Shown here piece by piece: positions 25,801 to 43,800 of a stretch of 64,000 nt of DNA. The stretch is from Phaeosaccion multiseriatum. Lineage: Eukaryota; Protista; Ochrophyta, other classes. Made by a program: the position numbers and the translations under genes. The stretch is from contig OZ218963.1 in the NCBI GenBank assembly GCA_965112735.1, positions 1,860,001-1,924,000 of the forward strand, written 5' to 3'. Each line of letters opens with the position of its first letter. Position 1 is the first letter of the stretch. Under the pieces are notes generated by a model. That model was not told the DNA's origin. It searched no databases and saw only the letters and a list, made by a program, of their open reading frames with translations.

Positions 25801-28800
25801 GAGCGTTCGCCGATGCGGATACTCTCGCGATGGAGGCAGCCGGTGACGGAGCTTTCACCTCCACTGTCCGTTTGGCGGTGACGAAGGAGGGAAGAAAGTG
25901 GGTAGCAGGGGAGGCTCAGACTTTTGAGTACTACCCAAATACAGAGGTGCGTGAGGCAGTGCAAGTCGAGCGGATACATACCTTTCACCATTTAACTGTT
26001 GCGATCGAAGACCTCTCCATTATGTTTTCCTTCCTTCCTTCCTTCCTTCCTTCCTTCCTTCCTTCCTTCCGTCCTTCCTTCCTTCCTTCCTTCCCTCCTT
26101 TCTTTCTTCCTTCCTTCCTTCCTGCCTTACTTCCTTCCTTCCTTCCTTCCTTCCTTCCTTCCTTCCTTCCTTCCTTCCTTCCTTCCTTCCTTCCTTCCTT
26201 CCTTCCTTCCTTCCTTCCTTCCTTCCTTCCTTCCTTCCTTCCTTCCCTCCTTTCTTTCTTCCTTCCTTCCTTCCTTCCTTCCTTCCTTCCTTCCTTCCTT
26301 CCTTCCTTCCTTGTTTCCTTCTTTCCTCCCTTACCCTTCACCCCCTCCCCAACCCTGCCTGCTCCGCCTCCTTCTCTACCTCTTTCTCCTCCTCCTCCTC
26401 CTCCTATTGTATTTCCTTTCCCCAGATCTACTCTTTGCGGCCCAGTCACGGTCCTGCCAGCGGGGGTAGTGTCATCAAGGTTGCAGGGAGAGGCTTCCAA
26501 GACGTACTCACTCTCTCTTGCCGCTTCGATGACCCTGGGGCGACCGGAGCCGGCTCCTTAGCTGGCTCCTTCACCGGCAGCACCGGCAGCAACGACAGCA
26601 GCGGCAGTGATGTCATCGCTACTGTCGCCGCCACGACCTTGCCGATCATCACTCCCGCTCGCTTCATCAGCCCTTACTCGGTGGCCTGCGTCACTCCTCC
26701 GCATACTGCCCGCAGCGCTCTGCGGCTTTCTGTGGCCAACAACGGAGTCGACTTTGGAAGCAGCAGTGGCACTGGTGGTGGTGGCGCTGCGGCCTTCTCC
26801 TTTGATGAAGATGTAGTGCTCCGCTCCCTCTCTCCTTCCGTAGGGGCGGAGGAGGGAGGTGCCACGGTGACGGTTTCCGGATCTGGGCTTGTCAATACCC
26901 ACAATCTCATGTGCCTCTTCGGGTCGACAATGTCCCCGGGGGCTCTGGTAGCTGCCACGTTTATCAATCCGACGGCAGTGCAATGTGTCTCCCCCCCCAG
27001 GGGAAGGACGGAGCCTGCCGTCATCGGAGTGACCGTTACACTCAACGGTTTCGACTTTGCGCCAGCCTCAACGCTCACTTACACCTACACTTCCGCCCTG
27101 ACGGTGTACGCGGTGAGCCCCGCGTTAGGGCCGGCACGCGGGGGGACGGTCGTAACCGTATCGGGCAGCAACTTCTTCAGCAGCAGTGGTGGCGGGATGG
27201 AGTGCCGTTTCGGGGCAAGTGGCATCGTCTCTGCGACGGTGCTGTCGTCCATGGAGCTGAGGTGCGTCAGTCCCGCCTCGGAGACCCTCGGTTCGGAGCG
27301 CCTGGAGATAAGGCACTCTTCCGACGGCGGCCCAGCGAGTGAGTGGACCAAGAGCGGCACCACCTTTACCTACGCAGAGGATCCCTTGGTGTCAGGGCTG
27401 TCTCCCCCTCGGGGCCCGTCCACTGGAGGCTCACTGCTGACGCTGTACGGAAGGCACTTCCCTGCCCCGTCCAGCAGCAGTAGCGGAAGCAGCACGCTTG
27501 GCTGTCGGTTCTGTGCAACCCGAGGGGGAGTTGAGGGCTTCGAGGGGCCAACGAGCAGTCCGGCGGCGGCCATTCATGTACCCGCCACTTGGCTGAGCAG
27601 CAGCAGCGTCTCCTGCATGACGCCCCCCTGGGTAGAAGCAGGAGCCTTCTCTGCTGGCGACGTGGGCGGGGGGTGGACGGTGGGTGTGTCGGTGACGCTG
27701 AATGGACAAGATTCATCCCCTACGGAGTTGCAATACTTGTATTACCCTCCTCCTGCTGTGACCAGCGTCAATCCCTCTCGTGGACTGGTGGGCGGGGGGG
27801 TTTCTGTAACCGTCTCGGGACACAACTTTGCCGACGGCGGCGGTAGCGGCGAGGACAGCAGCAGCAGTAGCGCCATGTGCCGCTTCGGCGGTTCCTCGAC
27901 TGTCACGGCCGAGTACATTGACTCGGAAACCTTGGTGTGTCTGTCCCCGCCTGGGGATGCGGTCCGTGAGGTGCAGGCAGTGGTTCTCGTTGGAGGAGGG
28001 CGTGTAACTTCCGAGGAGGAAGAGAAGGAGCAGCAGCAGCAGCAGCAGCGTGAGCAGCAGTGGGTGCATGCCTACATGCCTCCAGAGGCTGAAGAGGTGC
28101 AGAGCATTGAGGTGCGGGGCCGAGGCTGGCAAAGCGAAGTGCAGGAGGTGGTTGTACAGACGCTCATTGCCGCGGAGGAACAAGAGGTGCAGGTGCTGGA
28201 GACCTCCTTGCACCACGTGGAGGAGGTGCAGCGTATTCGTGTGGGGGCGAGAACCAACGCCAGCGAGGTGCAATTGGTACATATGATGGCAGCTGATGGG
28301 GGTGCAGGGGGTGGTGGTATTTGGGGGTGGTGGACATTACAGCACGGTTTCTACTCCTCTTCTCGCCTGAGGTGGAATGCGACGGCAAAGGAGGTCGAGG
28401 CGGCGCTGTTTGACCTACCCTCGGTGGGTGCGACGGCAGTGACGGCGGTTTCACAAATGTCGTCGGATACTGGTGCAGTGGCCTACAATGTCACCTTTTT
28501 AGATCAGACGGGAGACGTTGCTCTGCTTAGCGCCGGCGTGGATCATCTGCGCGGAGTGGTGGGTGGGGTGGTGAATGTGACGGTTACAGAATTGGCCAAA
28601 GGCGTGCCGTGCGAAGTGCAGACCGTGTCTACGCACCACGCCCCATCTGCGGCAGCATCGACGCTGAACTTTACCCTCTCGTTTGGCGCCGAGACAACAG
28701 CGGCGGTGCTGAGTGATGACACCACAGCAGAGGAGATGGAGGCTGCGTTGGAGGCTCTGGACGGGCTGGGAAACGTGATGGTGCGACGCGTGCGCCCCAA

Positions 28801-40800: not shown

Positions 40801-43800
40801 CTCTACCTGAGGTACTAGACGTGCATGTGATGCACAGCGTGGGCTACGGAGGTAGACGAGATGGCGTGTTGGTGGTACAGCAGGACGCCGACTCAGAAGC
40901 AATCACATTTGGAGCATCTGGCGGCGGCGTGGTGGGCGCGGAGAGTCGCTATAAAGTAGTGCTCAAGGAGGTGGTGCTGAATGCGTCCTCGGTGTTCCCC
41001 TGGGGGGGTGGAGCGGTGGTTTCTGACTACGCGTGGACGTGGACCACGAACCTTGCGGATGCCGGCGCTGCTGCCGGTCCCGCGGGGGCCGTGACGTGGA
41101 AGGAACAGCAGGGGAAGGGTGGCAAGGAAGAGGCGGTGATGGTCACGGGGGGCGACTTACCCTTGCTAGCAGCGGTGGGAATAGACACCTCTTCTTCGAC
41201 TGGACAGGTGGACAGCTTGCAGGGCTCCCACGTGTCTGTGGCTGTGGAGGAGCATATCAAGGGCCTCGCAGCGGAGGCAGGAGGGGTGGTGGCCGTAGAG
41301 ATTACCATGAATGGGCAAGATTACACCTCGCCCAGCACCAACTCCTCATACCCACGGGATGGTGGAGTCACCTTCCGCTACTTGCCGCGTGTCACCATCG
41401 ATGGTGTGATACCGTCGCACGGTCCCGTGTATGGAGGCACAGAGGTGCTTGTGCTTGGCTCTAACTTTGAGGCTTCCTCCTCGCTGAGCTGCAAGTTTGG
41501 GGAGGGTTTGGGAGCGGTGGTTTCCGCGGCGGCGCGGTTGGTCAACGACACTACGGTGGTGTGCGTCACCCCGCCCCGTGTAGAGACCGGCAGCGTGGTT
41601 GTGCAGGTGTCTAACAATGGCGTGGACTTTGCCGGAGGAGGAGCAGGAGGAGGTGATGGTGATGGTGGCGGTGGGCGGGTGGTGTTATTCACGTACGACG
41701 CGGTGGTGAGCATTGAGAGCGTGACACCGCACCTCGGTCCGCTGTCGGGAAACTTCTCTGTGACCATTGTCGGCGGACCCTTCGTGAGGCCGTCCTCCCC
41801 CACAACTACCACCACCAGCAGCAGCAGCAGCAGCAGCAGTAGTAGTAGTAGTAGTCTCGCTGATGGTGTCGGCGACATTCGCTGCAAGTTTGGCAATGTA
41901 ACGGTGCTGGCGGAGTGGAGAGACGAGACTGAGATTCAATGCTACGCGCCTCCTCAGGACGATGCAGGAGGAGGGGGAGGAGCAGGCGTGTACCCGCTGG
42001 AGGTGTCGTTGAACGATCAGGACTACACCACATCGCGCATGCCTTTCCTGTACTATGCAGACCAGCAGCTTACTCGCCTCACGCCCGTCTCCGGCCCCGC
42101 AGATGCTGCGGGGACTCCTGTTACAGGTACGCACCGTTCGTGTTTGGTAGTTGAAGTTGTAGTTGTGTTGTTTGTCAAACGATCTGCTTTGCCGTGAAAG
42201 CGGTTTCTTGACGACTTCTAGTCGGTGTCTTTTGTCAGTCAGTCAGTCAGTCAGTCAGTCCATCAGTCAGCGAGGGCATGGTGCTTTCTCCCTTCCCACG
42301 TGTCTGACTGCCGCCCCCCGTCCCCGTCCCCCCTCTTCCTTTCCCTCCCACCTTCCATGTGTGTCCGGACGCCATCACAGTGTACGGAGACGGATTTGTG
42401 AACTCCACCCTTCTGCATTGTCGCTTCGGCTATACGGTGGTTCGAGGCACCTACATCACCTCGCAGCAGATTGTCTGTGACACGCCACCCCTACTCCCTC
42501 ACCCCGACTCGGACACCGAAGGAGAGGATCTGCAGTGGTCCTCACTGAGTGACCAGATGCAGCGGCACCCCGACCCTCTCCACGGCAGCCGGCTGCTGTT
42601 CCCCGACAGCCACTACTACCCGCTTTACAAACAGCGCCTCGTTACCGTTGAGGTTACATGTAACGGCCAGGACTACACAGAGAGCGGCATTGGTTTTCTG
42701 TATCAAGCCGACGCAGAGGTTCATGCAGTGCACGCCGGTGGAGAAGGGGAAGGCAGTGGAAGGACCACGAGGTCGAGCGGCTCCATCTTTGTGGAAGGAC
42801 GGCACTTTGTCAACTCCACCTCCCTCACTTGTCGCGTGGGCGGGCACGTATCCTCTGCGGTGTTTCTCTCACGCGAACTCGTGGTCTGCCACGCCGGCTT
42901 GGGAACCCGAGGAGGCAGCACCAGCACCGCCACCGCCAACGTCAACATGGCCCACCGCCCTGCTACCAGCACGGGCCCTTTACCCTCTGGCGACAGGGAA
43001 GACTCGAACCCCGACTCAGCGAGCAGTATGTACGTGGAGGTTTCCAACAATCGGCTAGACTACACCTTCCAGCGCGCCACCCTCACTGCCGACACCTCCT
43101 GCCCTACTGGTCAGTTCTGCCCCCCCGGGTCGGACGAGCTGCTCATGTGCCCCCCGGGGACGTACTGCCCCGGGGAGGCCAACACGAATGTCACCCTTTG
43201 TCCAAGGGGGACGTACCAATCGGCACCGGGGCAGAGCGCCTGCCTGCGCTGCCCCATAGGCTTCCACTGCCCGGAGTTGGGTCTCCAGGTGCCCCAAGTG
43301 TGTCCTGCAGGGAAGGTGTGTGATGTAAGTGGTGTGGAAGTCGCGGACCAGCTCTGCCCCGAGGGCCACTTCTGCCTGGAGGGCACCGCCACGACAGCGA
43401 CGACGTGCGGTCACCCCAACCCTTCCAGCCGTCTCTTCCCCACCTTGCTCCACGCTGAGCGTCTCAGTACCATGATGAAGGGGGGATCGGGCGTCAAATC
43501 CATCGGTCTCGACGAGCAGCAGGAGCAGCAGCCGTGGGGTGGGGATGCCCTGGTGATGGGGTCGCGTAACACGGCCTGTTGGGACAACTCCACTTCTGAC
43601 TTTGGCCTGCAGCTGAGCGGGGTGCTTGGCCGCTTCCTGCAAGAAGAGCACGAGCTGCCTCTGTCGACAGAGAGCCCCTTCACCCCCCTGCGCGGGCGCT
43701 TCTGTCTCGACGACGCCTGCATGGGCTTGGATCCCCAACACGCGCACCAGGGCCAACATTCCCTCTCCACCCCTGGCTTCGACTACGGCACCTTTCAACT

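Follow-up and report, generated by a model that had tools for sequence, protein, structure and literature searches.

The window studied here, a stretch of 64,000 nucleotides from the genome of Phaeosaccion multiseriatum (contig OZ218963.1, positions 1,860,001 to 1,924,000 of the forward strand), contains one giant intron-containing gene on the + strand (4435..57470; all positions are those of the window, and all features below lie on this strand). Its product is quite probably a giant membrane-anchored rod of IPT/TIG domains (PF01833), in which the E-F loops of domains 56, 59 and 62 hold blocks of nested modules, called EVQ modules here, that are homologous to the C-terminal extension (CTE) domains of mycobacteriophage Bxb1. 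This reading is carried by the positions of the inserts, the restoration of the host domains when the inserts are removed, the homology of the modules, a nesting relation seen once in the modelled window sequence, and the conservation of the layout among stramenopiles.

The domains were mapped with an IPT hidden Markov model (HMM) built by jackhmmer on the window and then retrained on 37 domains upstream of 22 kb only. In this map, four uninterrupted IPT domains (52-55; 26435..27736, 40-75 bits each) are followed by a match ending after the C-x-x-P strand and, about 1,200 amino acids (aa) later, by a short F-G fragment; the same pattern then recurs. The interrupted domains are numbers 56, 59 and 62, all cut in the E-F loop, and their inserts measure 1,225, 644 and 1,657 aa. 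Host 1 (IPT 56) consists of an N-part with strands A-E that ends in VCLSPPG (27749..27955; HMM positions 4 to about 64) and a C-part with strands F-G (31894..31980; HMM positions 63-91). In host 2 (IPT 59) the N-part ends in QCVAPPH (32863..33075) and strands F-G follow at 35181..35270, and in host 3 (IPT 62) the N-part ends in SCEVPAF (36099..36299) and strands F-G lie at 41271..41387. The original prediction had described three IPT domains that stop after the C-x-x-P strand and resume only after some 1,220, 640 and 1,650 aa of EVQ modules, and had numbered the first of them 56. The HMM map and the rejoining of the halves located these hosts, the sizes agree with the exact ones, and the count of HMM matches gives the same number.

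The Pfam TIG profile covers the split hosts only over its positions 1-68 or 1-75 of 84. After deletion of the inserts in silico, a check proposed with the original prediction, the two halves of each host align with our HMM as one full-length IPT domain (positions 3 or 4 to 91 of 92). As a control, each N-part was joined to a random window of equal length taken from its own insert, 200 controls being scored. The rejoined domains exceeded all 200 in every case: 71.3 bits for host 1 (N-part alone 55.7, best control 64.0), 55.8 for host 2 (38.2 and 50.1) and 64.2 for host 3 (43.7 and 52.7). An alternative is that each N-part finds a surrogate F strand in the first EVQ strand and is thereby completed, the C-parts being vestiges or linkers and the protein an unbranched linear string. 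The alignments of the N-parts with the Pfam TIG profile and with our HMM do run through the first EVQ strand to positions 75-79, and an N-part with its native continuation, which is that strand, scores 3-4 bits above the N-part alone. This gain, however, equals the mean of the random-window controls, indicating that the first EVQ strand is not a surrogate F strand, and no G strand follows it. With the true C-parts the score rises by 15.6-20.5 bits and the alignment reaches position 91.

The predicted structures point the same way. Since block 2 of the window is interrupted by an intron, and since the window's own protein is absent from the protein libraries, as the best identity there of about 45% indicates, the Phaeothamnion orthologue was used to model host 2 with its block (P0012:1333-2034). 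The AlphaFold2 model, made from a 14-row alignment including two window exons, has a predicted local distance difference test score (pLDDT) of 83.6 and a predicted template modelling score of 0.59. Solved TIG domains superpose on it with 87 of 87 residues at a root-mean-square deviation (rmsd) of 1.8 A and Z 11.5 over the range 1..696, so that the modelled sandwich is built from both sides of an insert of about 590 aa. A search independent of Foldseek gave, over the same range, CAMTA1 (2cxk_A), EBF1 (3mqi_A), EBF3, plexin A1/A4, Met and 5l7n_A, with 82-88 residues, rmsd 1.7-2.2 A and Z 10.4-11.5. In this model of the orthologous host 2, the one host on which the closure was tested, an Ig-like E-set beta sandwich is formed by both halves, as structure prediction had been expected to show. 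In the truncated model of the window's own host 1 (27749-29992), the first EVQ strand has a pLDDT of about 39 and the TIG templates cover only residues 1..74-76, which also speaks against a surrogate strand, as does the superposition reaching residue 696 in the orthologue. Completion by the first EVQ strand is thus very improbable.

The EVQ modules are confined to the three inserts, with 28-29 copies in total. Block 1 (27956..31893), delimited by the jackhmmer module map and splice sites, holds 10 modules; block 2 (33076..35180), present also in orthologues, holds 5; and block 3 (36300..41270), which has no intron, holds about 13-14. Intron 31625-31887 lies just before the last 2 codons of block 1, in phase 0, at the seam between the last strand of the block and the F strand of host 1, and intron 34583-34755 lies inside module 4 of block 2. 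No intron lies at the other two block ends, so that the blocks are not arranged as cassette exons. In block 2, about 25 consecutive glycines (about 33780-33860) link module 1 with the three stacked EVQ strands that come next, and a short Gly-rich linker occupies the same place in the consensus of the orthologue alignment. The blocks are also rich in N-x-S/T sequons, about three times commoner than in shuffled sequences (18 against 6.0 in block 1, 14 against 4.8 in block 2, 41 against 13.2 in block 3). Most of them belong to a conserved N-A-S/T motif that precedes the helix of the module and is present in phage CTEs too, and the excess is therefore no evidence for glycosylation.

No Pfam family was found for the EVQ module when all pieces of the window and nine other EVQ-rich proteins were scanned. 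Apart from weak sub-threshold echoes of POTRA_1 and HMA, which were rejected, Pfam reported fn3 fragments. These stand beside EVQ modules in four other proteins (P0057 at 676-758, P0046, P0053 and P0109) and cover for example profile positions 1-38 of 84 (residues 719-758), or just 50-77; either fn3 domains there may host EVQ blocks, or the matches may be due to chance. A profile of 25 window modules matched the 'tail tip cage' protein gp23 of Bxb1 (9d93_Ma) at E 4.9e-37 in 5 stretches, the C-terminus of the major capsid protein (9d9w_Aa) at E 9.5e-7 and the tail tube protein gp19 (9d93_Ja) at 1.1e-3. Structure comparison gave gp23 as the top match of both predicted models (Z 14.2 and 14.3); its residues 388..525 align to the window model with 104 residues, rmsd 1.9 A and Z 14.3. 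Residues 307-397 of the capsid protein span one whole module (86-89 residues, rmsd 2.2-2.6 A, Z 10-11.4), and 8giu_1 of phage Patience matches the module models at Z 8.8-10.2. The neighbours of the module in the ESM Atlas are unnamed eukaryotic clusters from diatoms, chlorophytes and oomycetes. Judged by sequence profile and predicted fold together, the EVQ module is homologous to the Bxb1 CTE domains. The latter are displayed on the virion surface, are dispensable for infection and are immunodominant, and their function was unknown in 2021 (PMC8704799). The gp23 protein is described as a distal tail protein with three 'CTE-like' domains, and glycan interaction of Bxb1 baseplate accessory proteins is cited as well (PMC13252515). 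Within gp23 (9d93 chain M, 271-598) our profile matches come as three N-halves (271-324, 331-385, 391-462) followed by C-halves (514-565, 558-598), the order expected if its CTE-like domains are nested. They may thus be nested too, at a loop other than that of the EVQ modules, which we take as a lead only.

The arrangement of strands suggests that the blocks are recursively nested modules, not simple tandem arrays. As the alignment of the capsid CTE begins at the EVQ strand and extends over the V-x-V-x-E strand, a complete CTE has both a first and a last strand. Each block opens with a stack of short EVQ strands, after which come module bodies with no first strand adjacent to them. Block 1 begins with six such strands, S1-S6, at a pitch of 13-16 aa (27968..28294, from the sequence and from the DSSP assignment and pLDDT of the AlphaFold2 model), and in block 2 the opening strands, bodies and closing strands number 5 each, in the window as well as in the model of the orthologue. 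The window model (27749-29992, pLDDT 73.4), which comprises the N-part of host 1, S1-S6 and modules 1-5 (M1-M5), allows one relation to be followed directly. The capsid CTE of about 90 aa (307..396) aligns to it with 86 residues and rmsd 2.2 A over the range 158..521, that is from strand S5 (159-167; 28223-28249) to the last strand of M3 (512-520; M3 lies at 28967-29308), with the complete M1 and M2 skipped. Six templates in all give model ranges of 156-158..520-525 with 85-120 aligned residues. In the model M3 thus takes its first strand from about 240 aa upstream, in agreement with the bracket parse, and this provides direct, though model-based, support for nesting. The nesting depth obtained by parsing the blocks is about 3 for block 2 and 5-6 for block 1. 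If ten modules were strung out in a line, their two ends would be separated by tens of nanometres, too far for insertion into a loop; nesting would join the ends of the block, so that the block can sit in the host loop and the host can fold.

Two IPT domains lie between successive hosts each time, according to our HMM and the orthologue alignment. After host 1 come IPT 57 (P1; 31981..32313, HMM positions 4-78, 25.7 bits) and IPT 58 (Q1; 32320..32862); after host 2, IPT 60 (P2; 35271-35621, 45.6 bits) and IPT 61 (Q2; 35724-36092, 48.5 bits); and after host 3, IPT 63 (P3; 41391-41633, 62.7 bits) and IPT 64 (Q3; 41706-42053, 51.5 bits). Q1 is strongly degenerate and carries an acidic internal insert of about 40 aa. 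The general IPT HMM does not find it even at E 1000, its similarity to each of the other local IPT domains is below z 2, and its score against an HMM of its orthologues is 13.7 bits, covering the B-C and F-G strands only. It nevertheless aligns colinearly with orthologous IPT domains, which are clear ones at this position (up to 68 bits), and keeps the hallmark P, C, C-x-x-P and N-G-x-D columns. The original prediction of exactly two intact domains between hosts was right in the number, and 'intact' overstates Q1.

The next domain in the series, IPT 65 (H4; 42069..42703, HMM positions 4-91, 41.5 bits), is split by intron 42127-42380 and carries a non-repetitive insert of 48 aa (42491-42637). 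This insert had been predicted to occupy the same loop as the blocks; it does stand at HMM position 67, as in the hosts, and is kept in orthologues with the motif LFPxSHYYP. Inserts of at least 8 aa in the E-F loop occur, however, in 16 of 64 IPT matches; that of domain 18 has 41 aa and that of domain 66, the last of the array (42782..43063), 34 aa. Three loops, B-C, C-C' and E-F, are variable in the array generally. Because E-F inserts are common, IPT 65 is weaker evidence than the first three hosts, and its place as a fourth member of the period is suggestive only.

The period of three could itself be the trace of a tandem duplication of an insert-bearing unit of three IPT domains, with no structural or functional meaning. 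The hosts are indeed better mutual matches among the local IPT domains (z 18.5 for hosts 1 and 3, 16.3 for host 3 and H4). The intervening domains, however, do not pair (P1-P2 z 4.2, and Q1 matches nothing), so that any duplication must be old, and pairwise z-scores of 15 local IPT domains revealed no clear classes of host, first and second follower that a three-domain super-repeat would have. Moreover, the spacing, the middle block of 5 modules and the long-short-long order are kept at 23-45% identity, suggesting that the layout is maintained. A period that is a mere trace of duplication is possible and in our view unlikely; an origin by duplication and a present function are not exclusive, and such an origin does not conflict with the architecture of host domains and nested blocks proposed here.

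This layout is conserved across the stramenopiles. The module profile matched at least 13,674 representative proteins with E<=1e-3, of which 977 reached E<=1e-30; many of the matched proteins are giants of diatoms, oomycetes and green algae. Among the 150 best module matches, 24 carry IPT domains, and in these the EVQ blocks are interleaved with IPT matches. The period of three is conserved, with exactly three N-anchored IPT matches in 19 of 25 inter-block intervals and a median spacing of 352 aa; 4 of the other 6 have the same spacing of about 330-400 aa with one domain undetected. Neither a failure of the halves to rejoin nor a general break in the period, either of which would have counted against the original prediction, was thus observed. 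In the homologues the first host span measures about 1,000-1,300 aa, the second, with five modules, 530-750 aa, and the third, which varies, 165-1,650 aa, and this order is kept; the third block has about 165 aa, one module, in P0125 (4134-4410), against 1,657 aa in the window. The sources include Pythium insidiosum, Aphanomyces euteiches, A. cochlioides, Cantina marsupialis and Phaeothamnion confervicola, and all the proteins are annotated as hypothetical. Identity to the window protein ranges from 23 to 45% across oomycetes, Cantina and the ochrophyte, and a layout shared at such distances is old and maintained. A literature search on IPT-rich giant proteins of stramenopiles gave nothing relevant, and no report of this architecture was found.

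The window is eukaryotic DNA of about 60% G+C, in which a chain of long + strand open reading frames (ORFs), with the frame changing between them, is joined by short GT-AG introns rich in TG/CT low-complexity sequence. The extent of the gene follows from this chain, from Pfam matches and from tblastn colinearity with P0049, a transcript product of Cantina marsupialis. Its N-terminal limit, set by the ORF chain from about 4.4 kb onwards, is approximate. The product has about 66 IPT/TIG domains, then Cys-rich ephrin-receptor-like repeats (43064..45214; 56-64% identity to P0049 and P0125), then further unassigned domains and a C-terminal multi-pass membrane domain. Pfam finds nothing but IPT/TIG over the array and nothing but Ephrin_rec_like (PF07699) after it; no G8, PbH1 or Sema domain is among the matches of the window pieces, and the membrane domain has no Pfam match. 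P0049 matches 43064-57469 colinearly with its last 2,900 aa, and 9-10 hydrophobic helices stand at the C-terminal end of the orthologues P0049 and P0125. It follows that the gene extends to about 57.5 kb and that the protein is membrane-anchored at its C-terminus; the exons of the membrane domain lie at about 51900..55700, from tblastn mapping of the orthologue helices. The hosts had been predicted to be membrane-proximal, which holds relative to the IPT array, with the qualification that about 1,770 aa of Cys-rich and other domains separate IPT 66 from the first membrane helix. Long apparent ORFs with SFLP repeats, poly-Ser and poly-Pro at 25950-26430 and 44306-44640 are non-coding intron or low-complexity sequence between IPT and Cys-rich exons.

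A further alternative is an artefact of the gene model, in which the EVQ blocks would be introns, genes of their own or chimeras of the assembly. The introns do contain low-complexity sequence, the three of this region being filled by (TG)n and (CACT)n tracts, and no RNA evidence was obtained for this genome. On the other side, a single uninterrupted frame of 2,536 codons (34587-42197) spans the downstream junction of block 2 and the two junctions of block 3, and a frame of 1,900 codons includes the upstream junction of block 1. With the introns 31625-31887, 34583-34755 and 42127-42380 removed, the frame stays open for 5,723 codons, from 26435 to 44293. The DNA of the window is identical in contigs of four public runs, and the same interleaving is seen in transcriptome-derived orthologues (Cantina, EukProt) and in gene models of five other taxa. 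An artefact is therefore largely refuted, and its probability is minute.

Several points weigh against the proposed architecture. The four runs have flat depth, covered introns and breaks at low-complexity repeats; they thus look genomic, not RNA. The 'joints' listed in these runs are artefacts, all of them lying in GAG-rich repeats with sides of 20-22 letters. As regards the period, Q1 is barely an IPT domain, and the homologue P0058 (4539-5313) has five IPT matches, not three, in the 774 aa between two blocks. As regards the nesting, it is drawn from alignment ranges and strand counts of predicted models; all the three-dimensional evidence is predicted, from shallow alignments of 12-14 rows, and only the relation of S5 with M3 was seen directly. 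For its 10 bodies, block 1 shows 9 opening strands that can be recognised. The contrast in pLDDT between S1-S3 (38-45) and S4-S6 (77-86) had been predicted beforehand from the nesting parse; the four closest rows of the alignment, however, begin at S4, so that the contrast is confounded and was not counted.

Taken with these reservations, the protein would be a probably extracellular, membrane-anchored rod of about 66 IPT/TIG domains. In each host the chain would leave the domain after strand E and run outbound through a stack of EVQ first strands, one per module, and on its return would supply the remainder of the modules, the last one first, with some whole modules interspersed. Start and end of the block would meet at the E-F loop of the host, which could still fold as strands A-E and F-G reunite around the insert. 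The standard strand order of IPT domains puts this loop at the C-terminal pole of the domain, adjoining the next IPT. The expected result is three appendages, in the rank order long-short-long, at every third domain near the membrane-facing end of the IPT array, with a fourth small conserved loop insert three domains further on. On topological grounds the blocks would project sideways from a straight filament. The protein presumably stands on the cell surface, and by analogy with the domains that decorate virions its appendages may act in adhesion or in multivalent display, and may possibly bind glycans.

A protein is a linear chain, and a long rod outside the cell is normally built like beads on a string. 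If the present reading is true, a single polypeptide forms a rod and bears on it, at fixed intervals, three large side appendages, and its recursive domain-in-domain layout is much deeper than textbook cases such as integrin beta. A module with no Pfam family gains a name and a solved structural relative, the Bxb1 CTE, and a decoration domain of phage virions is linked to giants of the eukaryotic cell surface. Additionally, a conserved, uncharacterised pan-stramenopile membrane protein is defined, which has orthologues in animal and plant pathogens (Pythium insidiosum, Aphanomyces) and whose layout, shared from oomycetes to algae, has apparently not been described before. The architecture can be tested on a fragment of 745 aa. 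In a wider view, to which we incline only slightly, the CTE-like module is a self-nesting building block: as its first and last strands would adjoin, one copy could take up another behind its first strand, and so on without end. The resulting appendages, tree- or rod-shaped and with coinciding chain ends, could be plugged into a loop of an unrelated domain. In stramenopiles such appendages would have become fixed with a period of three domains along a giant IPT rod, and the same module stands on actinobacteriophage virions, maybe nested in gp23. This would be a general and so far undescribed route by which one polypeptide becomes a branched extracellular protein.

Comparison with known systems brings out both the likenesses and the differences. 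The Bxb1 CTEs, found on the gp14 capsid, gp19 tail tube and gp23 tail-tip cage or distal tail proteins (PDB 9d9w, 9d93), share with the EVQ modules the predicted fold (Z 10-14, rmsd 1.9-2.6 A, 23-26% identity) and the G-x-F-x-L, N-A-S/T and V-x-V motifs. The phage capsid and tube proteins, however, have one terminal copy, whereas here 28-29 copies are inserted in IPT loops of a eukaryotic membrane protein and appear nested several levels deep through the loop after the first strand.

Tandem PF01833 domains in the ectodomain of a membrane protein are shared with fibrocystin (PKHD1), PKHD1L1, the plexins and Met, and TIG structures of plexin, Met and EBF match the host and flanking domains here. 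The arrays of fibrocystin, PKHD1L1, plexins and Met have about 3-14 IPT domains, and to our knowledge other domains sit in them between the IPT domains, not inside an IPT loop. Unlike fibrocystin and PKHD1-like proteins, the present protein has only Ephrin_rec_like, and no G8 or PbH1, among its downstream Pfam matches, and its C-terminus is multi-pass (9-10 helices in orthologues) instead of single-pass. In the integrin beta ectodomain, the PSI domain contains the hybrid domain, which in turn contains the beta-I domain. This resembles the present case in that a domain sits in the loop of a domain which is itself inserted, and in that inserted domains have adjacent termini. It differs in that integrin beta combines three different folds to a depth of two, once, whereas here one fold appears repeatedly nested in itself and then in an IPT domain, three times at a fixed period.

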